From positions 4,650,001 to 4,714,000 of the forward strand of contig CDRNST010000058.1 of assembly GCA_977016875.1 (NCBI GenBank): 64,000 nt of DNA, given 5' to 3'. Shown here piece after piece: positions 18,375 through 49,279 of this stretch; the first letter of the stretch is position 1, and each line of letters starts with the position of its first letter. The stretch comes from Pavona decussata (Eukaryota). A model generated the notes under the pieces. It did no database searches. It had not been told where the DNA came from and saw only the letters and a list, made by a program, of their open reading frames with translations. The translations under genes were made by a program, and so were the position numbers.

Positions 18375-18537
18375 ATGTCAAGTACCGTCGGGATGGAACC
18401 ACGTAACCATGTCTCTCTTCGAGATGTGTCCGACTTACAGAATTTTTGCATCAAAAGATTTCACTGTTTAGTTTATTTCCCACAAGTATTTGCAGTAGAC
18501 ACATGTGCGTGTTTCGTACCTATTTTTAAAACATGCG
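18375..18537 (+). CDS. Candidate first coding exon of RTK-A
   Basis: ATG at 18375, open to TGC G|GTAAAT (phase-1 donor). An 81-nt intron then joins it in frame to the next exon (...FKTC-VCLSVHG-RRVRR). Signal-peptide character is only moderate. Confidence 0.35.
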
Positions 18538-18618
18538 GTAAATGTTCATGTGTACCAAGTAGACCAATTAGTCTTTAAAATTCAGTTCGTTTAATTGTTT
18601 TGTTTTTCTTTCAGGCAG

Positions 18619-18696
18619 TTTGTCTGTCTGTACACGGAAGACGAGTAAGGAGAAAAGAAGACGACGATGAACACTGGGTGGATAGTAATATTCATG
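18619..18696 (+). CDS. RTK-A exon: end of leader plus furin-type site (CLSVHGRRVRRKEDDDEHWVDSNIH)
   Basis: Polypyrimidine-GCAG acceptor, G|GTGAGT donor, 78 nt, phase 1-1. Conserved at 57557-57634. Confidence 0.75.
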
Positions 18697-20754
18697 GTGA
18701 GTAAGTAAAGGAACTAAACAACAGTCATAACTGAATCTTTACTTCATAGTCGATCCTTGGGAATTTACAGCTCAGTTATTGGCCGACAGCACTTTCTGTG
18801 GTAAATTATTCAACAGTCACATGCGTTTTGATTGAATGTACGCTTCTCGAAGGTCCTCAGCCCAACAAGAGAAAATTTACTTTTCTTATTAATATTGATA
18901 AAACATTTTGTCTTGAGTCGCGAGATATTAGTGCAGATGGAAGTTTTAGAGGTGCAACAGCAGGTCGAAAATCAGTAAGACAAGATTCCATTCTTACATA
19001 AAATGTTTCTCTGCTAAAATATCCAGAAGAGGAATACGAAAATACTAGCTGGTTTCACCAACAGTTTAAAGTACCTACGTTTCAATAACAAAAAAAGTCC
19101 AGTTTTCGTCTCAACCTCAAATAAAAAACAGAGGCTATTATATTAATACGAACTAATAAACTGGAATTTTCAACAAGAATAATGTCATAAAGCTTTTTAT
19201 CATCAAATTCTAATTGATCAGCTTGGAATTTTTATCAGTTTATTTTACGTAAAGAAACACGTTTGCATTTTCAATTCAAGTTACTTCTCTTTTCTTTAAC
19301 GTGATTTCTTTCAGTGCTATCTGCACTGTTGTTTCAAGAGTGCTGTTTCACGACCTTGTGATTCCTAACTAATTCCGCGCGTCGTGGCCATGAAGGGGGT
19401 TGGAACTGCCATGGTCATCATGATTGTTGTTGCCCTCGGCGAGAAAATAAGGGAGCGGACCTGGACGAATTGCAACAATCGGAACAGATCAGCTCCCATC
19501 GGAAAACTTGTAACGATTACATTGTTCCAGGGACTCAATTAACTTCAAAAAGGCTATTGAGCGAGTCATAACGAAGGGCGGATGGGATGAAAATGGATGG
19601 CAAGTAAAATTTCCTATTCCCTTTAACCTTTCCATATTCTATTGACAGACCTGTACAAGTCTATTGGTCATGGCCTCTGGTAAATCAATGCTATTTACTA
19701 GTCTGCAAGGTTTGGAGGTGGCTGGTTACGTTGGAGCAGGAAGGGTTCCAGCTAGAAATTTCAGTGTTCTTGAAATTCGCTAGTACTGGGCGTGTAATCT
19801 GTCGTGAAACAAGATGATATCATAACTTCTTCGTGTTCCACGAACGTTTGTTACGTATAATAACTAATGTTCAGTTTTTTCTTGTTTCCTTCTCTACATG
19901 TTCGTTTGATAAATTCAATGGGAGGACCACTTCAAAGCTCTATAACCAACAAACAATTAAACATAAAAAGTTCCAAGTTTCAATTACCTATGACTGGACA
20001 CTCAACCTCGTTCCCAGGATCTCTCCTCTTGGAGAGACCCTGAGAATGAGGTTGCTGGACACTTTGTTCGCTGACCCTAGTGAATACGTCTCTATTTAGA
20101 TCCGGAGTATTGCAGGGAATGTGAATACACCTCGCATGAATCGAATCTGAACTTATCAGATTTGTGGGCGGATAAAATACAACTTACCAGATTTGTGGGC
20201 AGATAAAAAATCTCATGAGTCTAGTCGAGGGACTGTCAAAGTGAATTAAGTGCTTATAATTATACAAATTAATCCCAAACAAGAAGCTTAAACCTGGGCC
20301 TAGGAATGATATTTTGTTGACGTATGGTAGCGGATCAGATGAAACAGTGACAGATATATAGAGCCGTTTTGTTATCTCTGAAGTTAAAAGAAGAAAAAAC
20401 CGGGAACAAATCGTCGCAAAATGTTACAGAGATTGATCTCCTTACGTCAGAGGTATTAACAAATTGGAGCCATTAAGACCAATTCACAAGATTTGAAGAT
20501 TCATACCGATGCCCCATAGTACAGGAGAACAAGGTTTTCTTACAATTAAATTATTGACATCACTCATTAATACATTCGCTATTTAGTGGGCCAAAACTTT
20601 CTTCTATTCTCTTGCAATTGTATTAAAATGGATCTCCGTCCACTTCAATTTTGTTCATATATTGTAAATAACAAATACAGCAAATCTCATTTACCAAGTT
20701 GAATTGACTATTTTTTGCCTTTTTATGACTGTGCAATTACTTTTGATCTTGCAG

Positions 20755-21078
20755 CTTGTAATTATTTGAGACTAGCTAATGGAAACTCGAAAGGAGAAGG
20801 AAGAGTGGAAATTTTCTACAATGGCACCTGGGGAACTGTTTGTGACGACAACTGGGATAAGAAAGACGCGCGTGTCGTTTGTCATGAACTTGGGTTCAGT
20901 AAGGCCCTTAGAGCTCCAACACACGCCCAGTTTGGTGCGGGAAGTGGCCCCATATGGTTGGATGAAGTACAATGCGTAGGAAATGAAAGTACTTTGACGA
21001 ATTGCGGGCACAATGGATGGAGAATTAACGATTGTAGCCACTATGAAGATGCGTCAGTGATCTGCTTAAGGAATTTGA
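20755..21078 (+). CDS. RTK-A exon: group A SRCR (scavenger receptor cysteine-rich) domain
   Basis: LRLANG..EGRVEIFYNGTWGTVCDDNWD...VVCHELG...GPIWLDEVQCVGNE..L..C.H.GW....CSHYEDASVIC. TTGCAG acceptor, GTATGC donor, 324 nt, phase 1-1. Confidence 0.95.
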
Positions 21079-21803
21079 GTATGCCAACAATATTTCGTAC
21101 CCAGACAACTATTTTTTTTGGAATAATTGCATGCAGGAGAATAATGTTTTGTTATCGTATTGTCTGATCAAGGAAAAAGAATTGGTTAAAACGCTGATCT
21201 CATCCTAGAATAATATCCAATCCTTTATTTCAGTAAAAAATGAAGGAAGCGCTATGTGGCTGGATTAAATGAATTACCAGGAGGTGGTGAACACAAATGC
21301 GTGCACTAAAATATGCAATTTGAGATAGCGGTGCAACCGCTAATCAACACAAATTGGGTCGATAATCATAGAAAATAAATAGTTGAGTTCGTCAGGTGCA
21401 ATAAATTACACCAGAGTCCGTGCTCCACAAAGAGCTTCGGTTCTAAATAGCTAAAACGGGAACTTGTTACGCATCTTTCCAACGAAAGAAGGAAAAACAG
21501 ATTTGGAAGCAATATGTTACTTTATTTGAAAATACTTTGAAAATGATGCTTACACAGATCATCGGCTAGTATTTACTATCTAAGTTCCTATTTCGAAAAA
21601 AAAAATGAAGGAAATTTCATAGATTCACCAAGTAAAACGAAGGAAGTTTGAACATGAACAAGGATCCTGCACAAGAGTGTCTGCTTAGCAGTAAATCCTG
21701 TTTCCTGTTATATTAACGATTATTAAAACCAGGATTCTTATAACCTGCGATAATCTTGCTTGGAACTTTATTAAAGTAACACGATTGTATTATGATGTTT
21801 TAG

Positions 21804-21855
21804 AGGACAAAGTCCTTGGTCACTGGCTCTTGGATGGCCGAGACCAGAACATAAG
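21804..21855 (+). CDS. RTK-A 52-nt exon: first strand of LamG domain 1 (DKVLGHWLLDGRDQNI)
   Basis: TTTTAG acceptor and AG|GTTGGT donor. Homologous 52-nt exons lie at 30788-30839 and 59123-59174. Confidence 0.85.
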
Positions 21856-23020: not shown

Positions 23021-23263
23021 TTAAAGCTTCATACACCGTTCCCAGCCTACCAGTTATTCACTATTTTATTCATCTCATGTATTTAATAGTTAGATGAGAA
23101 ATATTGGATAAATGTGGGTTCAAACTAAAATCTCGGTATGAGGTTGGGCTTTATATCTGCAACAGTACATGAAAAGCTATCACTATATTTAATTGTGTAA
23201 TTAATTATGGATCTGCGTGTTAATTGTTAATTGCGTTAACAATTTTTTTTCTTGCTATTTAAG

Positions 23264-23802
23264 TTTCAGTGGGTTGCCGCCGTTTATCGAAGGAAGGTGT
23301 CCTGGCAGCAAAGCTCCCCTTTTCAACCAATCGAATTCCTTCGCCTCAGCCCCTAAAGTGAATTTCCATGGTTCCAGTTTCACAATTTCCTGCTGGATAA
23401 AGCAAACGAAATGGAGCGACATGGGGGTGATTTATGGAGACTGGCATTACCCTCGCGGGCAGTTTCTGCTTAGCGCTGCCAATCAAAGTATTGTATTCTA
23501 TCGAAACAGCACCGTAAACAAAGATTGGTGGTCGTTGCAAAGTACAAACCTTTCTTTGATTGACTGGACACACGTTGTGGTCACGTGGCATCATCTCACT
23601 CGGGATGTGGCAATCTATGCTAACGGTAAAGAAGTAGGCAAGAGGATGTATTCTCCAAAGGAAGCATTCTACGGACCCACGGGGAAGCCTTTCATGATTG
23701 GTAACGACGGCCTTACGCTTGACCAGCAGTTCCACGGATCAGTGATGGATCTTTACGTATTTGACGAGGCATTGTTGCTGGATGAAATCAACGTGATAAG
23801 AG
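23264..23802 (+). CDS. RTK-A exon: LamG-like/pentraxin (concanavalin A-like jelly-roll) domain 1
   Basis: FTISCWIK, WTHVVVTW, IYANG, FMIGND, FHGSVMDLYVFDEAL..DEI. Phase-2 acceptor and phase-1 donor. Confidence 0.92.
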
Positions 23803-25441
23803 GTGTGAGTTTCATGCATTTCCTAGTGATAAATACTGAACATTTTTAAATTTAAAAGAAATATGTTAACTTGCAGGGCTATCTCCAATAAAAAAAATTC
23901 CTCTTCTGCATGGAAAGACAGTGTTAGACATTTGAAATCCAAAAGCATTTCAAGTCCACGCTTATGAACGGGCTGGCAACGAATCTCCTTTCATTTCATA
24001 CGTTTGCCTCATTTATGGAATCATAAAACTTTTGAAGACTAACAACTCCTCCTGTTGGCATGAGTGGAATTAGCTGATTTGTTTTTTAATGTCACCTAAA
24101 CTATTAGTTTTGATTGATTGATAGCTTTGGATTCTTATAGTAAAGCTATAAGCGCTATAATCTTTTGGTACCGTATGACTGCCATACCTAATCGTACCTT
24201 TTTGGCTCGCCGAGGGTATTTTGGCTCGACGAAGGGGGATTAGCTAGTTACAGTACTCAAATTCAGACCAAATCCTGGTGATATTTTTAGAAGTTACAGT
24301 AATAAAATTTGTCGGGCGTCCTTCGTGTGGCCTGCGAAGAGAATAATACGGCGGTGTCAACAAACGACACAAAAAGTGATGAATGAAAAATTATTTAACT
24401 TTGATCTTTTTTAGTTTATTTTACTTAGAGCAAAGTGACAAATCGTTGTAATAAAATATGTGTAAAGTCGTTCTCCGCAAAACTAATATTGGCATTTGAA
24501 AACGAGACAATTACAATGTATACTGAATGTTTCAGTACTTGTCCGAAAACATCGGGCAGTTGGCGAGCGCCCTCCATTTTAGTTTTGGCGGAACGTTTTT
24601 ACTCTTTTTACCACCGGAAAACACCTGCTAAATCCTAAATTGCGAAGTTTATGTTTTAACTGGCAAAACCTCAATTTAGTTTATCGTACAATGATATTAC
24701 TTTACTTGAATTCAGTAAAATTGATATCATGCGATATCATGTCAGTGACTTGATATGGTAGATTATTAGGAGAGTAGACTAGGCTTCTGATTGGGTTATT
24801 GCGAATTTGGGTACGGTAATTCTAGATATCGATGTCACAAGTCGTTGCACCCAATATACCGCCTTTAAAAAAGATGGAAGGTGCCATTTCAAATCGGGCT
24901 CAGATAGACCCGAGTTCAGCTCTTTTACCAGCTCAAGAGTAAACAGCTAGTACTCCTTTTTCTTTTCTGACCAATCGCGTTATTTTTTATAATTTGTAAA
25001 TATTTCCCTCTACTAAATATTAGCATTGATTAGCGGATTTCCTGGATACCTAAAACTGTACTAAATACCTAAATGTCACTCTTTTCATACGCCATGCATT
25101 TACACTGATAAACGTTTCAAGCAGTGTGTTTTGAATGATCGAGCACTCAATCAATCTGTCAAATGTGTTTCTACCAAATGCAATTCATATGCACGCTCAT
25201 GAACGGTATGGCAACGAATGTCCTTTCATTTTATACTTGTGCCCTATATATGGAGTAATAAAACTTTTTTTTAAAGAGAATCTCATGTTATTTTGTTGAA
25301 TTAAAAAGAATAAGTCTGAAAATGTTTGAACAATGCACCTCCTTTGAGGGTAGCATCCCATTTTGTGAACCATGAGAAAATTGCGGTTTAGCAAACGAAA
25401 AGGGACGATTGAGTAAATATCCTTATATTTATCTTTTATAG

Positions 25442-25744
25442 GTGTTCCTTTTATCGAAAGCCAAGATAAGGTCAATGAAGTTAAAGGAGGAGCATATGCA
25501 GTCAAATGGTGGCCTCACTTGAAAGACGTCTGTCAAGTTGAGCAGTACAAAGTCAACTACAGAGGAGTCTTTTCGCAGGCTTACAAAGGCAAATGGAACT
25601 CGGTTACCGTTAATAGAAATGCGACAAGCTACATCCTACACCTTCACTGTTGGAAAGAATATGAAATAGCAGTTACGTCTCTCAATTCATATGGAGAGAG
25701 TTCGATCAATGACAGCGAGCTGTGGAAATTCAGAACAAAAGGAG
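25442..25744 (+). CDS. RTK-A exon: fibronectin type III domain, copy A
   Basis: VKW..., YKVNYR, W..VTV, SYILHL...EYEIAVTS.N.YGES. 303 nt, phase 1-1. Confidence 0.92.
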
Positions 25745-27070
25745 GTAATTTATACTTTTATTATACGACTAAGGTAGTCCGAGGGCCGATAACTAAAATC
25801 AACCAATAAGATCGCTCTATTGCCGGTCCAATAATTTCCAAGTATTGGACCGGGTATCGTCCCGAATGATCCCGCGATGCGTACCGCTTTCAACTTAAAA
25901 TCAAGATGGCGGACGCCGACGATATCTTCCGAAAAATTTGCTGTAAAACTCCAGAATGGGTGGATGATTTCGAATGTCCCTCTTTTAGTCTTGAATTGGA
26001 ATTTCTTAAGGAAACGACGAGTGAACCTGCTCCAGCAAGAGAAACATCGAGTAGGAGTAAAACAAGCACCCAAGCAGATGTGAAACCAAACGCGAAGTCA
26101 ACAGTGACAGCCAACAGCTACAAGATTCTATTTCTGAACAAAAGTCAAGCAATACAGTCAATAAAACGAGGTCCGACATGACAGCTCTAAAGCGTTTTTG
26201 TTCTACAATTAGCGAGACGAGAGAACCAGAAACTTTTACTGCGAAGGAACTTGACAATTACTTCCAATATCTTTTTAAAGATGTCAGAAAAGAAAATAGC
26301 GAAGAGTACGAACCAAGTTCGCTCACTTCAATTCAAAGAAGCTTCCAACGCTACTTTTCTGAGAAGAGGTTACCTTTTAATATATTTGAAGATCAGGAGT
26401 TCTCCCGTTGAAGTCAAGTCCTTGCCGCAAAACGAAAGAGCCTTGTTCAGAGTGGTTTCGGCAAAAAGCCAAATGCTACGCGGGAATTAACAAAAGAAGA
26501 ACAAGAAAAGCTCTTTATAACCGGGCAGTTTGGTGACCACGATCCGCTGGCCCTGAAAAGAACCCTTTGGCGGTTTCTTTCTTTGCATTTTGGCTTTCGA
26601 GCCAGAGATGAGTCCAGAAAGCTGTGCTGGGGGATGTCCTACTGGAAAAGGATCCCGAAACAGGCCGAGAACTCCTCGCTTGGCGGACGGAAAGAGGATC
26701 GAAAACACGTCAAGGAAACACATAAACTGGCTACAAAAGACATTTCTGTCCGAAACTGTTTTTTACTGGTGATGCCAGATGCCAAGTGAAAGTCTAAACT
26801 ACGTTCAAGAAACACAGGCCAGAGGAAACGAAGAAACCAGAAGCTCCGTTTTACTTGGCTATAAAGCAGAAGAGAAGTCCTGACGAGCAGATCTGGTATA
26901 TGCGTTCACCATCAGGCAAAAATCAACTGGGCAAGTTCAGTTCCCAGACGCAGTTTCAACTGCTGGCCTATAATCCGGCAAGAGAAAGGTGTGTAATCAT
27001 TCCGTGAAGAAAACTAACATCGGTAGATTGCTTGACACCAATTTCCCCGAAAACTATGTGATGCAGATAA

Positions 27071-27298
27071 AGAGCCCTAGTCAACCACACCTTTGTTTTT
27101 GTTTATATGCAAGAGTTTGGCCATTATATTTCATTCGGAGCATGTCGAAATGAACGAAATCACTGTGAAACTACTAAAGATAATGAAACATATTTTCAGG
27201 AACACAACTTACGGTAAAGTAATAAGATTTCGCTTCACCTGATGCAATATCAATAATTTCGATGGCATCGAAAATGGCGGAGGCTGACTAGGATCGTT
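27071..27298. mobile_element. MITE inserted in the Crypton ORF (TAA flanks, Harbinger-like)
   Basis: Imperfect TIR CCTAGTCAACC / GGCTGACTAGG with TAA on both sides. Removing it rejoins NYVMQ to SGYKNIQSL. Confidence 0.65.
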
Positions 27299-27578
27299 TA
27301 AGCGGCTACAAAAATATCCAGAGTTTAAGTGCCTACAAATCGGCTCTGTCTTTAGGCCACCAACGTCAGATGTCCGATGCACTCAGCGGGAGAATAGAGT
27401 CAGCAACTGCAAGCTCCAGCGATGTAAAATCTGATGATTCTGTCAAGGTTACTTCAGTTTCTAGCAAAGGTTACTCGTCAAGTCCAAATGTCCTTGAAAC
27501 CTTCTTTACTGGTGCTAACATTTCATCCATGTCAGGGTGCACATTCCAGTTCATGACAGGACCGGTTAGCATCGTTAA

Positions 27579-28184
27579 AGTGCCCCTAACCCTTCAATTT
27601 GTTTTCTTTTGGTAGATTTCCATATCTGTGAAGAACTCATTTTCGAATTTTTTTTTTAGAAATATTGAATCCTTTTTATTTTACGAGCGCTTAAAGTTAC
27701 TGAAATTTTTAAATTTTTGCGCCCTTAAAGCCCCGCTGGACAAATTTTTGTCTCGTGGGCTCATTAGGAACGAGCCAATGAGAAGCGTCCGATATTTGAC
27801 ACTTTCTTAGCTGTGACGTAAGAAAAGGACACCAGAAGGATTCAGAAGGAATCTTATGCATGCTGATTCCTTTCTCTACATTTCGAGAGTTGCTGCATCC
27901 AAAAACCACACACTTTTCAACCATTTTCTCTGTTTACAATTGAAGCATTACCGCGAATCTTTGAATATTTTTGCACGATGTCCTTTTCTTACGTCACGCT
28001 GCATATTTGGCCGAGTGGGGGACTAATGCGAACGATAGGTGAAAATATCGATAAGACTGCCTTCACTTCTAGCGCTCGTAAAAAAAAAAAGGATTCAATA
28101 TTTCTCAAAATTTTTTTCGAAAATGAGTTCTTGAAAGATATGGAAATCTACAAAAAGAAAACAAATTGAAGGGTTAGGGGCACT
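27579..28184 (-). mobile_element. Kolobok-like non-autonomous transposon carrying a THAP-domain N-terminal fragment
   Basis: TTAA|AGTGCCCCTAACCCTTCAATTTG...CAAATTGAAGGGTTAGGGGCACT|TTAA with long TIRs. Minus-strand MVEKCVVFGCSNSRNVEKGISMHKIP resembles a THAP start. Removing it restores ...PVSIVNKPAPKRPTRLIIESDDED*. Confidence 0.85.
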
Positions 28185-28513
28185 TTAACAAACCAGCTCC
28201 AAAGCGACCAACGAGGCTCATTATTGAAAGTGACGACGAAGATTGAGTTAAGCTTATATATTTCTGACTCACCCTCGCGTGTTTGGTGGCTGCTTCTTTA
28301 GTGATTGATCAACTTTTGGTATTTACTGGAGTTTCGACGTGTCAAACCAACCGTTCATTTGAGACATTTTGAAAACTTTCCAGGAGTTTAAAACGTTAAA
28401 GCAGTCCACGTTGTTAAACTTATTCTTCCCCCACTTTAGCACAATGATAAAATTGTGATTTAACAAACGAATAGAGACGATTGAGTCAATATCCTTGAAT
28501 TTATCTTTTTTAG

Positions 28514-28816
28514 GTATTCCAGTGATCGATAGCCAAGCTAAGATCAATGAAGTTAAAGGAGGAACCTATGCAGTCAAATGGGAGCCTCTCTTGGAAGATG
28601 CCTGTCCAGTTGAGCAGTACAAAGTCAACTACAGAGAAATCTTTTCAAAGGCCAACAAAGGCAAATGGAACTCGGTTACCGTTAATAGAAATGCGACAAG
28701 CTACATCCTGCACCTACACTGTTGGAAAGAATATGAAATAGCAGTAACGTCTCTCAATTCATATGGAGAGAGTTCGATCAATGACAGCGAGGTGTGGAAA
28801 TTCAGAACACTAGGAG
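28514..28816 (+). CDS. RTK-A exon: fibronectin type III domain, copy B (recent duplicate of copy A)
   Basis: 303 nt, phase 1-1. About 84 of 101 aa are identical to 25442-25744, and ~85 nt of upstream intron is also homologous. Confidence 0.92.
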
Positions 28817-29299
28817 GTAATTTTTGATGGTTCTTTTAACATCAGTTCCTGCCAAATTAAAGGCTCGCTTAAAATGAAAGAAAATAATACTGTCTAACAA
28901 TGATGTTAGCTCAGTCAAGGTAACTGAAGTTCGTGCAACAAGCAGAACGGAAATGACGTTAAAAGGCATTAGATAATAGTTAGCCTTAATTGTTCTCTGG
29001 TCACAGTATACTGGCCTGAAATACAGACTTACCTTTGGCGGGAGATTTAGTATATTCTATTCTCTGGCTGGCCGGCATCTTGACTTGGAGTAAACACGTG
29101 AATTGATTTGAGTTTACCAAAGGAACACCACCCGCCATTAAATAAGCTCGATCATTTTCGATAGACATCTCTGACAGGGCACAAAAGTCTGCTAAAAGCT
29201 ATTCGTTGATAGAAACCAAGAAATAACTTTTCGGCTTATATTGAATTAGAACTATACTACTAGACGCATTTAGCAACAGCTGATTTTTATTGGCTCCAG

Positions 29300-29513
29300 G
29301 AGACAACTGCTGTGTTGAAGCTAATTTTCAAAGTCAACCAGGATGGGTAAATTGTTCCCTGGGAAGATACCTGAATGGAGTCAGGACAAAATCGTCTGGA
29401 AAAAATGGCGGCATGGATCATGTCACAAAAGGGAGATGCTGCACACCTCCACAGGAATACCAAGATCAAACACTTGTTTGTCAAACAGCAGACTGGAAAA
29501 CTGCCCTAAGCAG
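29300..29513 (+). CDS. RTK-A exon: Cys-rich three-repeat domain, part 1
   Basis: GDNCCVEANF...GWVNCSLGRYLNGV...MDHVTKGRCCTPP...CQTADWKTALS. CCAG acceptor (phase 1) and AG|GTCTGT donor (phase 2). Confidence 0.82.
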
Positions 29514-29839
29514 GTCTGTAAAATAAGTGACTTTAAATTGGTCTTTAGTATTGAAGAACGTGCTGTTGCAATGCATGCTCAATTACAAGAACGGCTATAT
29601 ATGTTGTCGTTAAGGCAGCACATTATCCCCGAGATAATTTGATTTTCGAATACTTTTCCTTGAGCTTCCTTTATTGATGCAATGGATCTGTGATGTGGGC
29701 CGTGGATTAGAACACTGATGTAATTATTTTCCGTGTTTATCGGGGTCCGAGTATTTTCTTTGAACTGAACGATTTAGTTCCTTTCGAAATCAAATTAAAA
29801 ATCAAGCAACTAACCACATTTTAAATAGAAGAAAGACCC

Positions 29840-29930: not shown

Positions 29931-30105
29931 AGATATAGCCGGCTCTACCAACTAAACCAACAAGCAAACTAGGAGCTGGTCATATTGTGAGTTTGTAATG
30001 TAGCCGTGAAAAATGAATGAATGAACACTTTTATATGAAACGATAATCGTTATTTGAACTGGGGGTGAAAGATCAATTTTAGGTTTTATATATTCATATT
30101 CATTT
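29840..30105 (-). mobile_element. tRNA-derived SINE-like repeat
   Basis: The minus strand carries the B-box GGGTTCGAATCCCGTTCAAGCC and a degenerate A-box region (..TTGGTAGAGC). No complete cloverleaf. Confidence 0.6.
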
Positions 30106-30147
30106 AACCACATTTTGCGCGACTATATTTTTATTTCCAAAATCTAG

Positions 30148-30434
30148 CAACCACACCTGGGCTGTCTGTCCTCACGGATATTTTCTTCAAGGATTTTACC
30201 GCTCCGATGATACTGGGACTGGGCTGCATAACATCAAGCAAGCAACATGCTGCAGGCCTAGAAACTTCAAAAGCGTCCCCCTGGACTGCTATGATCACAA
30301 TTTGACGGTTTCAGTTGCTAAAAAAGGCTGGAGTAAATGTCAAGACTGGTCCTATCTAGCCGGTGTATATAAGGGAGTCTGTGACAAGCTGCACTGTATT
30401 GAAACTTTTAGATGCTGTAGGATGCCTCCCTCAG
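30148..30434 (+). CDS. RTK-A exon: Cys-rich three-repeat domain, part 2 (biomphalysin small-lobe-like)
   Basis: NHTWAVCPHGYFLQGFYRSDDTGTGLHNIKQATCCRP...CYDHN...KKGWSKCQDWSYLAGVYKGVCDKLHCIETFRCCRM. Phase-2 acceptor and phase-1 donor. Confidence 0.85.
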
Positions 30435-36378: not shown

Positions 36379-36403
36379 TTGGCGACGAGAAACGGATCAA
36401 AAC

Positions 36404-39400
36404 ATGGCATTGATCGGGAAAATCGAGAAATACAACGAGAAGGACAACTGGATCGAGTACACCGAACGACTCAAGCATTACTTCGCGGCGAATGAAATTA
36501 CGGACAACAACAAGAAGCGAGCGGTACTGCTAAGCGCATGTGGAGCGAAAACTTACAAGTTAATCAGTAATTTGGTAAATCCAAGGAAGCCGACCGACAA
36601 GTCGTTTACAGAGTTAGTCAACCTGGTGAAGAATCGTCTAAATCCAAGACCCTCTTCAATCGTCTATCGATTCAAATTTAACAGCTGTTTTCGTCAACCG
36701 GGAGAAACAATACAACAATATGTCGCCGAACTGAGGAATTTATCGGAGCACTGTGAATTCAACGACCAACTGGAAAAAAAATGCTTCGTGATCGACTGGT
36801 TTGTGGCGTGAATGATGAACGCATACAGCGGAGATTACTGGCGGAAAGTCAACTGGAATTCAAGAAGGCAATGGAATTAGCCGCCGTGATGGAAACCGCC
36901 GACAGGAATACACGTGATCTGAAGCACGGGAATCCGAACGAAAAACCGAAAGAACCACAAGTTAACCGCGTGACCAAGGAGCCACCGAAACAAAAACAGC
37001 CGCCAAGAAACCCGAGGCAATGAAAAGAATGCTATCGTTGTGGAGGACAGTTTCATGAGGCCGATAATTGCAGGTATAAAGAAGAAGAGTGCTATAGATG
37101 CCGTAAGAAGGGTCACAAGACAAACAAGTGTCGCAGTAAACGTAAAACGAGTTTTCAAAACAGCAACAAGTTTGGAAACACACATCGCCTGGAGACATCA
37201 GAAGAGGCAGAGGAAGAATGCGAAAAATACACGATGTTTCACCTAGCTGCAAAGGAGAGAAAACCGTATCGAGTCGACCTACAACTAAACGGAGTTCAGA
37301 CGAGTATGGAAGTGAACAACGGCGCTGCAGCTACGGTCATCAATGAAGAAACCTATAAGAGAATAATTGATAGAAATTCTGCGAAGAATCGACCGCAGAT
37401 GGGAACCGCTAAAGTGAAGCTTCGAACGTACACAGGTGAATTAGTCAAGGTCTTAGGAACTGTGAACGTTGTTGTAAATTATGAGAAGCAAGAAGTGGAA
37501 CTGCAAACACTCGTAGTGGAAGGATCAGGGCCTAACTTACTGGGAAGGGACTAGTTGAGAGTTCTGAGACTCAACTGGAAGGAGCTGTTCAAAATCCGAG
37601 TTGACGAAAACAACCATTCATGAGTCTTCACTTGGAAGGTTGATCGACCGGTACTCGGAAGTGTTTCAAGAAGGACTTGGAACATTCACAGGCCCAAGGG
37701 CGAAGATCCATGTGGAAACAGAGGCAAAACCGAGGTTCTTGAAGGGGAGACCAGTGCCATACGCCATGACAGGAAAGATTGAGGCTGAACTCAAAAGGCT
37801 ACAAGATGAGGGAACAATCGACCCTGTTCAGTTCTCTGAATGGGCGGCCCCCATTGTACCTATCCTAAAACCAGATGGCTCCATTCGTATCTGCGGAGAC
37901 TACAAAACAACTGTCAATCAAGTGTCTAAGCTGGACAGTTACCCTATCCCGAAGGTTGAAGATCTCTTGCAACTCTAGGATGAGGTAAAAAATTTACTAA
38001 ACTGGACATGAGTCAGGCCTATCAGCAATTACTTCTGGATGAAGAGTCCAAACAGTACACCACCATCAACACACACAAAGGATTGTTCCAGTACAACCGT
38101 CTGCCTTACGGAATATGGTCAGCACCTGGAATATTTCAGCGGAACATGGGGAATCTACTGCGGAACATTCCTCATGTAATCTTCCGGGTGGATGACATAC
38201 TAGTGTCCGGAGCCTGTGACGAAGATCACTTAAAGAACCTGGAAGAAGTCTTGAAACGACTAGCAAGCGCGGGCTTGCGACTGCGGAAAGACAAGTGTGT
38301 GTTCATGGAACCTCAAGTAACGTACCTGGGGCACAAGGTCAGCAAGGAAGGCATTCAACCGTTGCAAGACAAGGTCGATGCTATTACCAATGCACTAGCA
38401 CCTACGAATGTGTCAGAGCTCAGATCGTACCTGGGCATGATTAACTACTACCAGAAATTTCTGCCCAACTTGTCGAGTGTGTTGGCTCCACTACATGGGT
38501 TGCTACGTAATGAGACTTGTTGGCATTGGGGTAAAGAGCAGATGCATGCATTTCAAAAGTCGAAGGAATTCCTGAAGTCCCCTAGACTCCTGGTCCACTA
38601 CGACAGTTAGAAGAAGTTAACCTTGGCATGTGATGCATCACAGTATGGTTTGGGGGCCGTTCTTTCTAATCAAATGGATGATGGCTCAAAGCATCCAAAC
38701 GCTTATGCTTCCAGGACCCTGTCCGACGCAGAAAAAAATTACTCCAACTTGGAAAGAGAAGCACTAGCGCTGGTATTCGGGGTGAAGAAATTTCACCAGT
38801 ACATTTATGGCAGACATTTTAGCTTGGTAACTGACCACAAACCGTTAGAATCATTGTTTAATGAGAAGAAAGATATACCTACTATGGCAGCAGCGAAGAT
38901 TCAGCGTTGGGCCTTGACGCTGGTTGCCTACGACTACTCCATTGATTGCAAACCAGGACCTGAACACGCCAATGCTGATGCCCTCAGCCGACTGCCCTTG
39001 CCTGTTAGTCCGCCGACTACACCGTTGCCTGCAGGAACTGTTTTTGCAACGGAAATCCTCAATTCAACACCAGTGAGTGTGAATGAAATCAGAACCGGAA
39101 CCAGATGTGACCCGATACTGTCTCAAGTAGTCAAGTATGTACAGCAAGGTTGGCCTAATCACAACTCAGAACAAGTATTTAAGCTCTACTTCACAGGGAA
39201 AGATGAATTCAGTGTTCAGGATGGGTGTTTGCTATGGGGCAATCGAGTGGAGGTACCCCCTAAAGAAAGAGGAAGAGTGGTAGAGGAGTTACACAAGACA
39301 CATCCTGGAATTCGCCGTATGAAGGCGTTGGCGAGAGGTTATGTGTGGTGGCCGAAAATGGATGCACATTTGGAGCAGAAAGTGCGTCAGTGCAGTCCTT

Positions 39401-40384
39401 GCCAGGAAAACAGGAAGTCACCGCCAGAAGCTCCTTTACATCTCTGGGAATGGCCTCATAAATCCTGTGTCCGACTTCACCTAGATTATGCAGGTCCGTT
39501 CCTTGGAAAAATGTTCCTCAACGCGATAGATGCCCACTCCAAGTGGATGGAGGCGTTTCCAATGAACACATCAACATCAAGTGCGACTATTGACAAATTG
39601 AGAATCACTTTTGCAACACATGGTCTGCTGGAAATCGTTGTCACAGACAATGGTAGCAACTTCACAAGCAAAGAGTTTGAAGATTTTCTCAAACAAAATG
39701 GAATCCGTCCCATCAGAACTGCGCCATACCACCCTGCGTCAAATGGACTGGCTGAGAGGGCCGTACAAAAATTCAAGGAGGGAATGAAGAAAATGAGTGG
39801 AGGAAGTGTGGAGACGCGAGTTTTGCGATTTCTAGCCCGTTACAGAATCACCCCTCAGACTTCCAGAGGAGTGTCGCCAGCAGAATTACTGTTAGGGAGG
39901 AAACCCAGATCGAGACTAGACCTAGTCCACCCACAAATTGGAAGGAAAGTAACATCAAAACCAGACTTCTCAGAAACAGGCACATGACTGGCATGCTAAG
40001 GAACGCACCATGCTGGAAGGAGAAACTGTTTATGCAAGCAACTTCAGAAGAGGACCAAAACAGTCGACTAGTCCAACTTCGTTTGTAGTTCAACTGGAAG
40101 ATGGGGGACTGTTGAGAAGACACCAAGACCATCTGATACAGCGGTCCACTGTTCTCCAAGCGTCTATTCCTAATCAAGAGGAAGTCCCAGCTGACCTGAT
40201 TCCAGCATCGGTGGAAGCTGAAAAGCCAGATTTGCAGGTGGAAGAAACTCCGACCAGCTGTCAAGACACCCCACCAGCACTGATTGAGCCTGTGCAGTCT
40301 GCTCCCCTAGGTGTCCCAGAAAAACGCTACCCTACTAGGAACAGACACGCCCCTCGATACTTGGCTGATTTTGTTACTAAGTGA
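36404..40384 (+). pseudogene. Gypsy gag-pol with multiple stops and frameshifts
   Basis: LRDRLVCG, CYRCG..H...C twice, degraded protease (EVNNGA), WAAPIV/ICGDY, RVDDIL, ACDAS.YGLGAVL, TDHKPL, integrase HHCC, D(N)G and NGLAER. Stops at 37021, 37552, 37976 and 38608. Confidence 0.93.
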
Positions 40385-40476
40385 CTTGTTAGGTTATTAG
40401 GATTGAGACACTTAAGAACTGCAAGCTAAATTTGTTGTTGATTTATTGTGATAGTTTTCATGACTTAGTGAGGGAG

Positions 40477-40618
40477 TGTGGAATGTTGTGAGCTTTGTAA
40501 CCGCTCCTCGAGTAGTTTTCCAGTAGAACAGTTCGGATGAAACACGTTGTCCACAGTTAGAATTAAAAGTAGTTGCGTTCTCTAACTTTGGCTGGTTTAA
40601 TGGACTCAGAATAATACA
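40477..40618 (+). repeat. 3' LTR
   Basis: Direct repeat of 36237-36378, preceded by AGTGAGGGAG. Confidence 0.95.
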
Positions 40619-42665: not shown

Positions 42666-42850
42666 ACTCTACAGATAAAGAGGCAAGGAACCATCTTCTA
42701 GAGGAAATTGAGTTAATGAAATCGATTGGTTCTCATCGCAATTTTGTGAGCATGTTGGGTTGTTGGGTTAACTCAGAACCCATCTTTCTGCTGCTGGAAT
42801 ATCTTGCATATGCAGATCTACTGCACTGGCTCAGAAGAAAGAGGCAACAG
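42666..42850 (+). CDS. RTK-A exon: kinase subdomains III-V
   Basis: LLEEIELMKSIGSHRNFVSMLGCW....PIFLLLEYLAYADLLHWLRRKRQQ. Phase 1 to 0. Not in the ORF track. Confidence 0.92.
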
Positions 42851-43772
42851 GTGACATGAATAACTACCATATACCGTGGTGAAAGGGTCATTCTCATTGT
42901 TCCCAGAGGGTCGACCTTTCAAATTTATTTTACCATAATCAGCAAGAACGATTTCATCGACGGGGCCTATAAAAGACTTGTTTCGAGAACGTGTTTTCTT
43001 TGGCTGGTTATATACCGTTGAAAATTTAGCCCAAACCTCTAAAGAGTAAAGTGTTTGTACACGTAACACGGAGGTGCCTGAACAGATCTAGAGGTTGATG
43101 AAGTTGTTTCTGGGACCAAGCAAACTCCTCCGTACTGAATATGGAGAAATGAAGTCCGTAAGAATAGGTTGGGCTATACGTGGATCTATTAGCGACATTG
43201 AACTTGTCTTGGAAAGGTGTTCGAGTAATTGGAAAAATCCTTCTAATTTTCTGCAAAGTCATTTCAAATATGCCTTGAAATTAAAAGGACAGCACTCAGC
43301 TGCCTGTATACGTCTGAGTGGTATTGTTCATATTAAGATCATAACAGTTCAGTTGACGAAGCAGTGTACACACTTTCTTGATAGACGAGAATTCATATAC
43401 GCCATCCGGTGGTTTTAGTCTCGTATCCTTGATTAGAGATTAAGCAGAGGGCTGTGGAGAAAGGCCCACGAGGTGGTTTGTAAATCAGCCCAAATGCGTC
43501 ACTACTCTACCTCTTATTCAAACGCGAAATGGTGACCAACAAACATGGATAATTCATTCAGTGTGCGCACGCCTCTATTGCTTGTTTCGGGGAGTTGGGC
43601 CATGCACTAGCTTAAGTCCACCTTTCTGACCCCTTTGTAATTCTTGCAAATTTTCAAAATTGTCTTAAAGTTGCCGGTTTGAGAAAGGTTATGAGTCACG
43701 ACTTGGGCATTTTCCCATCTACTGACAAATCGTCTCACTCAGATTTTGATTCTTGTAATTTTCCTCCTTTAG

Positions 43773-44209
43773 AAAACCTATCGCAAATTTTACGATAACG
43801 AGGGACCTACACATGCTGCTGAAAAAACGCAAGAGTAATGGCATTGGCTGAAAATACAGCAGAAAGTGAGGGAACGTTGTGCCCTCAAGAAATATTCCCT
43901 GCAAGTGGGAATGCTGAAGACGGCGGAGGACGCTTAGATGTAATTGAAGTGCAAAGTTTCAGTGCAGATGTTAACTCTAATGTACGTTTGGATGAAAACG
44001 ATAGAGAAAGCAAGCACACAGCTTTTCCTGTAAAGACAGCAAGGGATCAAGCCGTAAAGATGGATGATCAGGAGTTCACCTGCTCTTTCTATCTTGTAAG
44101 TCCAGAAAATGCAGAGGATGGAACCAAAAGCCAGGGAGACAAGTCTCATGACGGCGAGGTCTCATTGAAGGACCCTTCTTGTTTCGAGCGGAAAATGGCA
44201 CTGGGAATG
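43773..44209 (+). pseudogene. Degenerate duplicate of the kinase-insert exon
   Basis: Colinear with 45068-45529, but a ~22-nt deletion gives TAA at ~43836. Subdomain VIa has decayed (VSLKDPSCFERKMALGM). Splice sites are intact. Confidence 0.8.
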
Positions 44210-45067
44210 GTAAGTGACTTTTGTTTGTTTGTTCGAGTTACAACCACTTCAACGCTAGCTATTAATATTAGTAGCCATACGTTAGTTCATTTGTCCTTAA
44301 AACACCTTACATATCCCCGCAACACGTCAATCATTGCAAGGAAAGATCAATTGAATGTTTGGACTAATTATGCTTAGTTGTTTTTATGTGGGCATGATTG
44401 GTAGGCATGTTTTGTGATTTAATAACAACTTTGTCCGACTACTTACTGGGACAGCTAGTTTTCATCAGGCAATTAGGTTGACGGATTAGACTTCGCCATT
44501 TATAAGCCAAAATTCGGCTGTAAGTGACAGATTTTGCCCTTACTTTTCCAGGATGAAGCTCTCTCCATAAGTCAGCACTCTCGCCATAAGTTAGCGCCTT
44601 TTCCGGCCTCTTGTTGTTTTCAGTGTTTATCCTGAGGAACTTCAGGAACTTCCATTTCTATACCTAAGAGCTAAAGTCACAGCAACTCCGTTAACTTCTG
44701 GAATTGTTCATTCCAGGATAATGGTTCTGCGATGACAGGAAAGCATGTATAGCCGTTTAAGTTCAATTATGAAGAAACAATGAAGGTTTGTCTATAAATT
44801 AGCTCAAAACACGACGCGTGACAACTCCAGCCATTTTCTGCAGCTGAATCTTACATAGCTTGCATAAATAAATTCATCCAGGGTTTAACGATTGTGCCGT
44901 ATTCTCTAGATCGACCATGTATTACAAACAGTTTCAGCAGAATGGTGGACTGAGTGCTTGCAAACATTCTCAAACTAGGCTTTAAACTTTTGCATCATTT
45001 TCACGTACCGTAATCTTTTCTCTTTTCAGTTTTTTCAGTTCTGTTTCCTTTGATTTTCATGTTTTAG

Positions 45068-45529
45068 GAAAGCTATCAAGAGTGTCACGACACCGAACGA
45101 TTTACCCTCGACGCTGACAAAACGCAACTTGGCGCGGAAAATGATTCAAAAGTGATGCTACTAGCTAAAAACCCTGCCGAAAGCAAGGAATTGGGTTGTG
45201 AGGAAACTACGGCTTCAAGGATTGCTAAAGGCGAAAAGGAACACGGGGATATTACTCAATTGCAAATTTGCAGTACAAGTGATAACTCCAAACAACTTCT
45301 GAATGAAAATACAAGCGAAAGCGATCACGCAAGTGGCTGTGGGGAGTTAAACGTGGATAATGCTGCAAAGGATTTCGAAGGCTTGGCTTGCTCTTCTCAG
45401 TCTGCAAATGAAAGTGTTACTCCAGAAAATGCAGCGGATGGAAACGACAGCAATGGAGATGAGCCGCACGATGACGATTTCTCTCCAAAGGATCTTCTTC
45501 GTTTTGCTTGGCAAATAGCGCGGGGAATG
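45068..45529 (+). CDS. RTK-A exon: acidic kinase insert plus subdomain VIa
   Basis: Open phase 0-0 exon ending FSPKDLLRFAWQIARGM|GTAAAT. Confidence 0.9.
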
Positions 45530-45828
45530 GTAAATAATGTTAGTTTGTTTTTTATGAGTGTCACTTGAACGCCGGTCGATAATACACATACGTTGTTCGG
45601 GTAACAGTTCAGCTTTAAATACTGTTATGTGACCATTTCTTAGAATGAGGTTAAGAGCAAGGAAACAGGAGATTTTTAATTTTCAGAAATTGGTGTTCAT
45701 TATTTATCTCAATAGGAATTTTGAACGCATCCATTGTCAATCGCGATTTCTTTATAAAATCCGTAAAAAATTCATTGATACATCGATCTAGTATGGATTG
45801 ATTAATTGATTTTCTATTCCTGCCACAG

Positions 45829-46040
45829 GGTTTCTTGTCAAGTAAAGGATTTATTCACCGCGATCTAGCGGCAAGAAATATTCTCCTTGGGGAGGGCAAA
45901 GTGGTCAAAATTTCTGACTTTGGACTGATGCGCCACATTTACGGAGACATCTACAAAGTCAACAAAGGGAAGAAACTCCCCGTAAAATGGATGGCACCCG
46001 AGGCACTTTTTAACAGTGAATACACTACGAAAAGCGACGT
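45829..46040 (+). CDS. RTK-A exon: catalytic and activation loops
   Basis: [30 protein letters not shown] and YTTKSDV are tyrosine-kinase signatures. Confidence 0.97.
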
Positions 46041-46778
46041 GTAAGTGTTGTGACATGTATCTTAATTAGCCATGCAGAAACTGTTACCCAGTAACAAGCA
46101 TTAAGGGTTTTATATATTTTGCACAATAGGAAACGTTTGTGCATCAGCTAAGATACGTCTACCTCTACGAGCAAGCAAGATCAAGCAAAATGCTGGGGTG
46201 TGATTGTGCGTTAGTTTGGCAGTCCATAAGAAATGTATTATGTACTATTTTCTATTTTTTTTTTCGGGCAAGGCGCGCACCGCCGTTGAAAGCATTAGTG
46301 TATGACCTTTTTTCATATTTGTTCAATGAAACATGTCTTTTTTGTATGAAGGAGCCTCTGCGGAGGAGAGAGTTGCAATAATACCCTCGGAGTTATAGAG
46401 AGTGGTCGGCTATATCCGTCTAACATGGATCACAAAACATGGACAGTCTAGATTGCGTTAATAGTAGAAATCTGGAAGGAAGTGCGGGTGGAGATTTCGT
46501 CATACACACTCAACAATGCAGGCGCAATGATCGACTTTTAAAACTCTAACTTTGGATTCTTTTGTAATTTTCAAAAAAAATGTCTCTGTGTAGGTCGACA
46601 GCCATGTTGGGGTGGGGGTTATCTTTCTTCATGTACGGTAATGATTTGTTTTTCTTTTCTGGACAGTTTTCCCTTTATGTTGTTAGTTTAATTCTTCTTT
46701 AATTTGTATGCCATTTCACGAAAGTCTAGCCTAGAACACGAAGATTATTCATGGACATTTATCCTGTAATTTTTTCAG

Positions 46779-46819
46779 ATGGTCTTTTGGAGTTCTGCTG
46801 TGGGAGATTGCCACAATGG
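46779..46819 (+). CDS. RTK-A exon: subdomain IX (WSFGVLLWEIATM)
   Basis: 41-nt exon, phase 2 to 1, canonical splice sites. Confidence 0.93.
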
Positions 46820-46859
46820 GTAAGAAAACAAGAAAAGAATGAGTTGTATATATAAATTG

Positions 46860-47460
46860 TCTGACTGCCTGATTGACCGACTGGCTGACGGATAGACGGA
46901 AGGACTGACCGATTGATTGACTGACAGGTCTGACTCACCCACTCACTGACTCGCTAGCTCACCTGATAATGATTTATCATGACTTCAGATCAGCTGACAG
47001 TGATTGTGGGTCAGGAGGTGACTGGTGGGGCCAATCCAGGTCCTGAAGGCCTGCCCACGCGTGGGACATGTGGGAGAGTGCTGCAGTTGAATTGGTGGCA
47101 AATAAAACTGTGGGTTAAACAGATATCCACGATTCTAAGCGCTTCTATGACGCTATCTATCCTGTGTGCAGAGACCATTCTTTCGGCTCCTCTCCCCTCC
47201 TCAGCTCCGAATGACTGACTGGCTAACTGAATCATTGTCCCACTCATCCACTGACTGACTCATGCCAAAAGAAATTTAATCAGTGACATGCTGAATGGAT
47301 TGATGATTCACTGAATGACACACCAACTGAATGGCTGAATGACTGACAGAATGTTTGATTAACAGACTCACTGCTTGCTATTTTTTTTCTCGCTTGTTTG
47401 CTTGCCATGGATTGGTCGATTGATTGAGTGAAAGGTGATGATTGGCTGATACGTGTCTGC
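46860..47460. repeat. Degenerate (GACT/GATT)n tetranucleotide tract interrupted by ~230 bp of unrelated sequence
   Basis: CTGACTGCCTGATTGACCGACTGGCTGAC..., resuming at ~47210. Confidence 0.6.
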
Positions 47461-47800
47461 TTGATCGAGTGCATGGCTAAGGAAGAGGAAGGGGGCGAAA
47501 AGAAGTGGAAGTCAAGAGGGACAGTGTGCAAATTATTTTCGAAAAAGATCTTATTGTCAATACGCGAATGGAGAAAAGTGCTGCCACAGCTTACTACAGC
47601 TGGTGCTACCAGTGTTGTATTTTTAACGTAACTTAACTCTTAATGATTGTTAGACCTTAACCACGTCAAAAATAGGAACCAAAAGTCCTTTTAGACTAAC
47701 ATCAATTCAGACAGCTTTACTAGAGGGTACAATGCACCAGCGTTTTTGTATGTACAGATCAAGTATTGCATATCATTAAAAGCATGATTATATTTCCAAG

Positions 47801-47897
47801 GAGGAAATCCGTATCCTGGATTAGACAACAAAGAGATGTACAATCTTCTTAAGACTGGCTATCGCATGGAGAAACCAGACTCGTGCTCTAGTGAAGT
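47801..47897 (+). CDS. RTK-A exon: subdomain X ([31 protein letters not shown])
   Basis: Phase 1 to 2, canonical splice sites. Confidence 0.93.
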
Positions 47898-48401
47898 GTA
47901 AGTTCTTTTTGTTCTCTTTTTATATGATATATCTTTAATGAAACTGATTCCTAGTTTGTTGGCAACGGTAAACAAATACTCAAATGTCCATTCTTATGAG
48001 CTTAGATAAGCCATTTCTTTTTAAAAATGACCGAAGTAATTGCGGCTATTTTAAAGAGAATGCTCATAAGTTATTTCACCACCATCATAACCATGATCAT
48101 CCGACTTATGACATTCCGCTATTAGTGTTAATTAGGCCACCAATAGCGTGAAAGTCAGTGTACATTTTCTTATGCCCGTCACTTTTCCAATGGTGTCCCG
48201 CTTGTGCCTGCAGCACCTTCCGCGCATTTGACTTTATTCGGTCTCAGGCCTGCACATCAGAAGACCTTTCGAAAATCTTTTCTAGCCAATTTGATGCACA
48301 CATGCAGCTTAAGTATACCGTCCCAAGTCTTTTGTTCCAGACTATGAGGTCTGGTCAGGTCTTTTTCTAAACCCGGTTTTCCTTACGCAATGGAAGCACA
48401 T

Positions 48402-48548
48402 TATAGAGCGTTTTCATTAACGTGACTACTTGCCATATTGGTTTACTGAAACAAAAGAAAGCATTTGCATAAAAATGGAGTTTAACTCCCAGAGGCTTAG
48501 TTTGGGACACCAACATGGGTGCCATTTCTTTGTGTGAATACACTCTAT
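48402..48548. mobile_element. Short MITE
   Basis: TATAGAGCGTTTTCA ... TGAATACACTCTAT inverted termini. Confidence 0.55.
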
Positions 48549-49092
48549 TAGAAGGATACAGCGGAAACTGTTGCAACATTTAGAGAAGGTTAAGGATGAG
48601 CCTCCTTTCCGATCACTGTTTTTTTTTTTACTTTCCTTCTCGTATAACATATATTACCATGAATTCATTATCGCTGAATTCGCAAAACCGGAGCGCGAAT
48701 TTCTTGACAAGCATATTTCTTTTTGAGTGTCAAAGTGAGGGCTTCTGTTCTATAATTCCACGGGATTGCTAGCCATGTGAAGGAAATTTGGTTTGCCGAG
48801 GTAAAAAAAAAAATCTTAACCTCGGCAGCATTTCAACCCATGTGGGTTACAATACCTGCTGAAGACAGAGGCGATCATGAAACCACTGAGAGCATTGGTG
48901 GCCGCGGACATGTCTGGCGTCTGGCGGACTCCAGTCACAGTTTCATCTAATATGTGCCCAACCCTCAGCATAAACTTTCTCTGCCCGAAATATTGGTTCT
49001 CGCCAGTACAGGACTACAAAATTCAAAACACAGTGTTTATTCAAAGATGAAATCGCCATTGAACAATTCGTAATACTGCAGTAATTTTTTAG

Positions 49093-49279
49093 ATTCCAGC
49101 TGGTAATGGAGTGTTGGAATGAGAAGCCCAGTGAGCGACCGACATTTGATCAGGTGACGACATTGTTGGAGACGATGCTTATGGAGGACACCCCTTACTT
49201 TGACCCTGGATTGCTGGATGAGTCGAAGGCGTACTACAATGTGATGCCGGAGGAGGAGATTGTCGTGGAAACCACTTAG
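49093..49279 (+). CDS. RTK-A last coding exon: subdomain XI plus Tyr-containing tail
   Basis: FQLVMECWNEKPSERPTF...TPYFDPGLLDESKAYYNVMPEEEIVVETT*. Confidence 0.93.

Follow-up and report, generated by a model that had tools for sequence, protein, structure and literature searches.

A probable young pseudogene from a receptor tyrosine kinase family of stony corals in Pavona decussata

We examined a 64,000-nucleotide stretch of the genome of the coral Pavona decussata (assembly GCA_977016875.1, contig CDRNST010000058.1, positions 4,650,001 to 4,714,000 of the forward strand; hereafter the window), which has about 40% G+C and no N runs. The region from 18667 to 49279 probably corresponds to one gene of a family of type I receptor tyrosine kinases (RTKs) in stony corals, and the copy in the window is most likely a young pseudogene. 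A 22-exon model on the plus strand is the best fit to this locus. Every intron is bounded by AG and GT except for one GC donor, and the exon phases are consistent. The reading frame of the window copy is interrupted, while two paralogues in the same genome, on contigs C10 and C51, keep an open frame all the way from SRCR to the stop codon. Joints in RNA contigs, the phases and the conserved exon order argue strongly that the family encodes a one-gene receptor kinase.

Exon structure and domain content

The open frames of the modules all lie on the plus strand between 20.7 and 49.3 kb, and domain searches against Pfam were made exon by exon. The model is 4,840 nt long when a second kinase-insert exon is excluded, and 4,842 nt, a multiple of three, when two deleted bases are restored. 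An initial annotation of this DNA had taken the module exons to be phase-compatible as they stood. However, phase 1 at the ends of the SRCR and second Cys-rich exons does not fit the phase 2 in which both LamG exons start. Direct splicing from SRCR to LamG1, and from the second Cys-rich exon to LamG2, was ruled out by this clash, which therefore required two 52-nt micro-exons (21804-21855 and 30788-30839). With these and the GC donor, the exons chain.

The 5' end was revised. The gene start had been placed at 18375, and a furin-site exon had been proposed near 19369-19539. Both gave no Pfam match and lie in poorly conserved sequence that is not kept as coding. The sole R-x-R-R motif, RSRR, lies within FN3 exon d. 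Conserved 5' exons were found at 18667 and 19315 instead. The tentative exon 1 (18667-18696) consists of an ATG and nine codons (MNTGWIVIFM) resembling the start of a signal peptide, followed by a GTGAGT donor. It showed about 90% nucleotide conservation in the downstream paralogue, C10 and C51, and the surrounding flanks were 70-79% identical. The tentative exon 2 (19315-19357) is hydrophobic and may encode the remainder of the predicted signal peptide. This exon and its tttcag acceptor are conserved in four copies, and frame A chains in phase 1 into the SRCR exon, but the exon-2 frame and donor differ among the four copies. The placement of both exons from this four-copy conservation is tentative.

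The first recognizable module is an SRCR domain, as had been claimed. Its exon (20755-21078, phase 1-1; open frame 20703-21164) matched PF00530 with an E value of 2.5e-34 and 118 bits against a cut-off of 26.1, and its AG/GT sites are kept in C10 and C51. The micro-exon at 21804-21855 (KDKVLGHWLLDGRDQNI, phase 1 to 2) follows. It is the twin of the RNA-supported micro-exon downstream, precedes LamG1, and is conserved with its AG/GT in C10 and C51. The LamG1 exon (23264-23802, phase 2 to 1; open frame 23205-23846) matched the ConA-like Laminin_G_3 family (PF13385, E 5.5e-20, 72.5 bits, cut-off 27.6). Of the earlier description as LamG or pentraxin-like, the first half was thus borne out, whereas Pentraxin (PF00354) reached 19.3 bits, under the cut-off of 25, and covered the C-terminal half only.

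Four FN3 exons had been named and all four are present, b and c above the Pfam threshold, a and d below it and identified by their similarity to the other FN3 exons. FN3a (25442-25744, phase 1-1; open frame 25417-25806) scored E 0.017 and 15.7 bits with fn3 (cut-off 25), and E 2.4e-4 and 21.8 bits with FN3_DSCAM-DSCAML_C (cut-off 39). It was called FN3 because it is 90% identical to FN3b (28514-28816; open frame 28459-28824; fn3 E 1.1e-5), its recent duplicate. Transposon debris separates the two, and C10 and C51 have a single FN3 exon at the corresponding place. FN3c (32170-32469, phase 1-1; open frame 32073-32573) matched fn3 with E 2.3e-7, and C51 has three copies of this exon. FN3d (33333-33635, phase 1-1; open frame 33320-33733) scored E 2.5e-4 and 21.6 bits with fn3 (cut-off 25), and E 1.5e-6 and 28.8 bits with FN3_DSCAM-DSCAML_C (cut-off 39). 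The exceptional GC donor belongs to this exon (CAG, then GCAAGT). It lies at 33635 and is conserved in C10 and C51; an RNA contig piece begins at 34840, with TCAG in common. A phase-1 GT donor at 33650 was ruled out, being absent from C10 and C51.

Between FN3b and the second micro-exon lies the three-repeat Cys-rich module that had been described earlier, with open frames at 29284-29523 and 30083-30520. Exon 1 (29300-29513, phase 1 to 2) holds repeat 1 and is 86-87% conserved in C10 and C51, and exon 2 (30148-30434, phase 2 to 1) holds repeats 2 and 3. In alignment, the repeats read C-P-x-G-[YF]-F-L-x-G ... C-C-R-P. A Pfam search with 23 family members gave no match at E 1 or better, DERM included. 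Language-model features placed the module at 0.97 to dermatopontin (DERM) clusters. Its AlphaFold2 model had a predicted local distance difference test (pLDDT) value of 84, and fold comparison gave template-modelling scores of 0.54 to a cnidarian dermatopontin cluster and 0.66 to mollusc aerolysin-like models. Among solved structures the hits were poor (Foldseek E at best 0.65, VIA Z at most 3.2, PDB profile E 4.1). Taken together, the module looks dermatopontin-like in these features and models.

The second micro-exon (30788-30839, EMIVLGHWKLDGSDQDI, phase 1 to 2) is conserved in C10, C51 and the neighboring paralogue. Judged by position and sequence, the two micro-exons likely encode the first strand of the LamG1 and LamG2 folds. 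The LamG2 exon (31225-31775) is the second LamG domain of the initial annotation. Laminin_G_3 was indeed detected, though in two pieces, since an in-frame TAA at 31541-31543 divides the exon into open frames of 31145-31540 (20.8 bits) and 31544-31840 (31.8 bits; cut-off 27.6). No ectodomain exon matched an Ig family of Pfam at E 0.1 or better.

The transmembrane exon, the split kinase and the YYNV tail were all found as had been proposed. The transmembrane and juxtamembrane exon (34844-34994, phase 1 to 2; LVIGLISGIVVLLVITFIGVTSWI then HKKIVKKKK) lies in an open frame at 34831-34998, in which a hydrophobic stretch of about 23 residues is followed by the basic stop-transfer sequence KKIVKKKK. 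Kinase exon 1 (35347-35550) carries GRGAFG and VAVK and is frameshifted; the aligned exon in C10 and C51 has 206 nt in one frame. Kinase exon 2 (42666-42850) runs from the alpha-C helix to the hinge (PF07714, E 1.7e-10), and its closest solved kinases are FLT3, FGFR3 and CSF1R. An exon of 154 acidic, Ser-rich residues ending in LLRFAWQIARGM (45068-45529, defined by its open frame and splice sites) sits between this exon and the HRD exon, which makes this a split kinase. It is 92% identical in C10, and the insert has a single tyrosine. The HRD exon (45829-46040; PF07714, E 1.2e-27) also holds the activation-loop tyrosines and PVKWMAPE, and its closest solved kinases are KIT, PDGFRA, MuSK and VEGFR1. 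Two short exons were located by pattern search (WSFGVLLWEI, PYPG): (V)WSFGVLLWEIATMG at 46779-46819, 100% identical in C10, and GGNPYPG...YRMEKP at 47801-47897. The last exon (49093-49279) is an open frame with the C-terminal end of PF07714 (ECW..RPTF), then TPYFDP, AYYNVMPEEEIVVETT and the stop codon. The YYNV of the tail doubles as YNVM. PF07714 matched four exons, two at or above threshold (E 1.2e-27 and 1.7e-10) and two below (E 0.0024 and 0.027), and the catalytic core motifs could all be read: the glycine loop, the VAVK lysine, the HRD-exon motif and the P+1 loop PVKWMAPE.

Upstream of the insert exon lies a duplicate of it, the second kinase-insert exon (43773-44209). It is open over 459 nt in C10 and C51, where it has phase 0-0, a conserved acceptor and a GTAAGT donor, and has 437 nt in the window. 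It could be a mutually exclusive or an additional exon. We also noted that this duplicated exon ends in a degenerate copy of the alpha-E helix, CFERKMALGM.

RNA contigs of run X12 aligned to 30000-35999 connected several of these exons. GT..AG joints at 30434 to 30788 and at 30839 to 31225 lead from Cys-rich exon 2 (covered over 30146-30432) through the micro-exon to LamG2. The transmembrane exon (to 34994) was joined to kinase exon 1 (35347), which supports the earlier claim that ectodomain and kinase share one transcript, although none of the RNA contigs on this interval spans the whole gene.

Paralogues in the genome and lesions in the window copy

Six-frame searches of the whole P. decussata genome (602 Mb, 1,180 contigs) returned 73 LamG matches (about 44 at 46% identity or more), 38 matches to the second Cys-rich exon (18 at 60% or more) and, at 79% identity or more, 23 matches to the HRD kinase exon. 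From these matches, we estimate a modular, partly tandem family of roughly 20 copies, in line with the expanded family that had been proposed. SRCR, LamG1-type, Cys-rich and LamG2-type exons occur in the same order and with the same spacing at C10:2.71 Mb, C51:5.59 Mb, three C151 loci and C58:4.79 Mb. On C10 and C51, the window exon peptides are colinear from SRCR through the last kinase exon, with conserved splice sites, no stops and no frameshifts. Exon number varies by copy: SRCR exons from 1 to about 6, FN3 exons after LamG1 from 1 to 2, and FN3c from 1 to 3. SRCR exons are numerous in their own right, with very large tandem arrays at C10:4.44-4.90 Mb, C198:1.28-1.41 Mb and other places. 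A first look gave 484 candidates, and each of the 150 that were scored had E 1.5e-35 or better.

The start of the next tandem paralogue (57605-64000, plus strand) was recognized within the window by self-comparison, open frames and alignments. The paralogue has exons 1 and 2, the micro-exon (about 59118-59169), LamG (open frame 61962-62555) and FN3 (63425-63838), and its kinase exon lies at C58:4724771, beyond the window. At the 5' end it aligns with 14.4-20.0 kb, and the match resumes at the equivalent of 30.5 kb, which makes it a short form without the SRCR-LamG-FN3-Cys-rich block.

Comparison with its paralogues did not support a reading of the window copy as an intact gene. In LamG2, the codon at 31541-31543 is TAA here and CAC in C10, C51 and the neighbor. 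In kinase exon 1, two bases are missing after 35488 (ACAAGT in two paralogues, ACGT here), which changes the frame between GRGAFG and VAVK. Compared with C10 and C51, the second kinase-insert exon has lost 22 nt after 43829. Because of these three lesions, receptor function would be impossible for the window copy. Most likely it is a pseudogene that decayed recently, in a family evolving by birth and death.

The rest of the copy has changed little, its kinase exons being 95-100% identical to those of C10. Between copies, the ectodomain evolved faster (dN 0.067-0.082) than the kinase (dN 0.019-0.026), with dN/dS (omega) values of 0.52-0.58 and 0.20-0.50, respectively. The ectodomain is under purifying selection overall, and there is no clear sign of positive selection. 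The dS value relative to C10, on a different contig, was 0.037 for the kinase exons (42666-49279) and 0.13 for the ectodomain exons. The low kinase value suggests gene conversion or a chimeric 3' half.

The family reaches beyond P. decussata, judging from shorter forms on two contigs of other coral assemblies. Contig L030 carries, at 45-75% identity, Cys-rich, LamG and two FN3 exons together with the full set of kinase exons. It comes from another organism, since no LamG copy in the P. decussata genome is more than 53% identical to its own. Contig L031 carries LamG, FN3, FN3 and kinase, and its LamG clusters at 90% with a Montipora capricornis protein.

Other features of the window lie in the introns of this gene or upstream of it. 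The intron between kinase exons 1 and 2 contains a degenerate Ty3/gypsy-type long terminal repeat (LTR) retrotransposon (36237-40618, plus strand) with RVT_1, RT_RNaseH and rve matches. Its LTRs are 142 bp long, begin with TG, end with CA and are 95.8% identical, and a 5-bp target duplication (GCCAC) flanks it. The gag, reverse transcriptase, RNase H and integrase open reading frames (ORFs) are divided among several frames. The element appeared by eye to be nested in an older one with reverse transcriptase-like motifs (35.65-36.23 and 40.62-41.26 kb); the one flank of this older element that was scanned had no Pfam match. In the intron between FN3a and FN3b, a Crypton-like remnant on the plus strand and a THAP-like ORF on the minus strand (25870-27924) gave weak QRICH1, DUF3504, Phage_int_SAM_4 and THAP matches, and the FN3 exon duplication may be linked to transposon insertion. 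Upstream of the gene, an ORF at 1280-1756 (plus strand) opens with a signal-like N-terminus, contains ten cysteines that end in CCTGDKCN, and closes with a hydrophobic C-terminus; it had no Pfam match and by eye resembles a Ly6/uPAR three-finger protein. Three minus-strand ORFs (5101-6042, 8754-9452 and 10875-11321) share the N-terminal motif CFFHP..E....F.V.P.W.SE and Ser/Pro-rich C-termini. They matched no Pfam family and may form a small tandem family.

Relation to known receptors

PDGFR, KIT, FLT3, CSF1R and VEGFR (classes III/V) and FGFR (class IV) have been grouped as 'FPVR' receptors (Yeung et al. 2021, PMC8662651). The coral gene resembles them in that it encodes a type I receptor whose kinase is interrupted between the hinge and helix alpha-E and carries PVKWMAPE. 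When both kinase exons tested were compared with solved structures, these receptors gave the best sequence matches. It differs in its ectodomain, which is built from SRCR, LamG, FN3 and dermatopontin-like modules with no Ig-like domains, and in its long, acidic insert, which has one tyrosine and 154 residues, or perhaps about 300 when the second exon is counted. Lacking the Ig ectodomain, the coral gene stands outside the PDGFR, VEGFR and FGFR classes. This agrees with the earlier statement that it matches no classical vertebrate RTK class.

A canonical SRCR domain, present in 1-6 repeats in the coral paralogues, is a feature shared with the SRCR-superfamily scavenger and pattern-recognition proteins of cnidarians. 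Here, in contrast, it forms the N-terminal module of a kinase receptor. The survey of cnidarian SRCR proteins by Neubauer et al. (2016, PMC5119243) describes no SRCR-kinase protein, since the word 'kinase' appears in it once, in the title of a reference. Our literature searches turned up no kinase described with an SRCR-LamG-dermatopontin-like ectodomain.

Early-branching animals and related lineages have lineage-specific RTKs whose ectodomains are of lectin type or novel; examples are Hydra 'Sweet Tooth', with C-type lectin domains, and the RTK families of choanoflagellates. The coral family is similar in that a conserved tyrosine kinase has been exon-shuffled to carbohydrate-binding or adhesive modules and expanded in a lineage, but its modules and their order differ. 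The dermatopontin family (PF14704) takes in invertebrate haemagglutinin or aggregation factors. The coral Cys-rich domain shares with it three repeats of C-P-x-G-[YF]-[FY]-L-x-G ... C-C. Unlike dermatopontin, D-R-x-W is replaced by L-H-x-I-E, and the domain is part of a receptor rather than a small secreted protein.

Possible function and competing interpretations

The predicted length of intact members is about 1,600 residues and rises to about 1,770 with the second kinase-insert exon included. The predicted order is signal peptide, SRCR (1-6), Laminin_G_3, FN3 (1-2), the three-repeat dermatopontin-like domain, Laminin_G_3, FN3 (2-4), one transmembrane helix, and a PDGFR/VEGFR/FGFR-type kinase split by the long acidic insert and ending in a YYNVM tail. 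A multivalent extracellular ligand would bind the lectin-like or adhesive ectodomain and cluster the receptors. The clustered kinases would then trans-phosphorylate the two activation-loop tyrosines (YGDIYK), and tail tyrosines of the pY-x-N and pY-x-x-M types would recruit SH2 adaptors. For dimerisation, autophosphorylation and SH2 docking, we infer these steps from established RTK biochemistry.

It is plausible from the domain types and the birth-and-death evolution that the family senses non-self, symbionts or allogeneic tissue. A more specific proposal is that the intact members are germline pattern- or partner-recognition receptors of stony corals, reading microbial, algal-symbiont or allogeneic surface glycans by way of the SRCR, ConA-like and dermatopontin-like modules and signaling straight to phosphotyrosine without an adaptor kinase; in this full form we regard it as unlikely. 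A developmental or adhesive role, in matrix or cell-cell contact instead of immune or symbiont recognition, as for other FN3/LamG receptors and matrix-binding dermatopontin, deserves serious attention, though it falls short of being probable. The purifying selection on the ectodomain is consistent with such a role, and LamG, FN3 and dermatopontin-type modules are typical of matrix and adhesion proteins. On the other hand, the roughly 20 copies, the tandem arrays, the variable numbers of SRCR and FN3 exons and the decayed copies resemble families of recognition proteins with fast turnover, and the ectodomain diverges faster than the kinase. None of these points is decisive.

Several observations weigh against a receptor gene of this family decayed in the window. 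An exhaustive protein search with LamG1 found no full-length transcript or annotated family protein; above 49% identity it returned ORF fragments only. Its further matches were bacterial Laminin_G_3 proteins and, among named cnidarian proteins, short LamG-only ones. The X12 RNA contigs are 90-96% identical to the window copy and so come from paralogues. At the 5' end, C10 carries a TGA in the exon-2 frame that chains in the window copy and its neighbor, and a 14-nt deletion shortens this exon in C51. The C10 change is TGT to TGA in an otherwise intact copy (L002 about 6047-6089, corresponding to C10:2710047-2710089), and either the 5' model is wrong or C10 is damaged too. The lesions of the window copy are known from the assembly: in the public runs, every DNA contig at 35492 had the paralogue letter, and the allele was not covered. 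Finally, the TAA lies within a newly made AC-GTAAGT (31536-31545), and use of this donor would keep phase 1 and remove the stop.

These last points bear on whether the window copy works after all, its lesions being artefactual or haplotypic, or bypassed by splicing to give a full receptor, a kinase-less form or a secreted decoy. Such a working copy would fit the otherwise well-kept exons, the close identity of its kinase exons to those of C10, the splice sites, all of which are intact, and the new donor, which cuts after 31538. We nevertheless consider it quite improbable. Three separate frame-breaking changes are present, and one of them, CAC to TAA, is a two-base change that is unlikely to be a sequencing or assembly error. 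Splicing at the new GTAAGT would take out the second half of LamG2 along with the stop, deleting half a LamG fold, and would not rescue the kinase frameshift; a bypass of the 2-bp deletion would cost the glycine loop or the catalytic lysine. Decay of the window copy thus remains the preferred reading.

It is very improbable that the locus holds separate genes, a secreted or membrane adhesion protein beside a cytoplasmic or short receptor kinase: no single locus-spanning transcript was seen, the form next door lacks the SRCR-LamG-FN3-Cys-rich block and gene callers on related contigs yield just fragments, but an RNA contig joins the transmembrane exon to kinase exon 1, the phases continue without a break from SRCR through to the stop codon, the stretch from FN3d to the kinase has no start, stop or conserved 5' exon, and the exon order is kept at several loci of this genome and partly in two other assemblies.

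Taken alone, the window is rather ordinary, a probable pseudogene in an expanding family. For annotation, it illustrates how such genes may be overlooked owing to 52-nt micro-exons, a GC donor, transposon-filled introns and decayed copies beside intact ones. RTKs are usually discussed as about twenty conserved classes. The coral sequences point to a multi-copy RTK family with a different ectodomain, in which phase-1 domain exons vary in number among paralogues. If the ligands are microbial or symbiont surfaces, recognition would be wired directly to phosphotyrosine in a reef builder, with a bearing on symbiosis, disease and allorecognition. Were its intact members recognition receptors of the kind proposed above, the family would stand as an animal counterpart to the receptor-kinase immunity of plants, with exon shuffling and birth and death as its modes of evolution.

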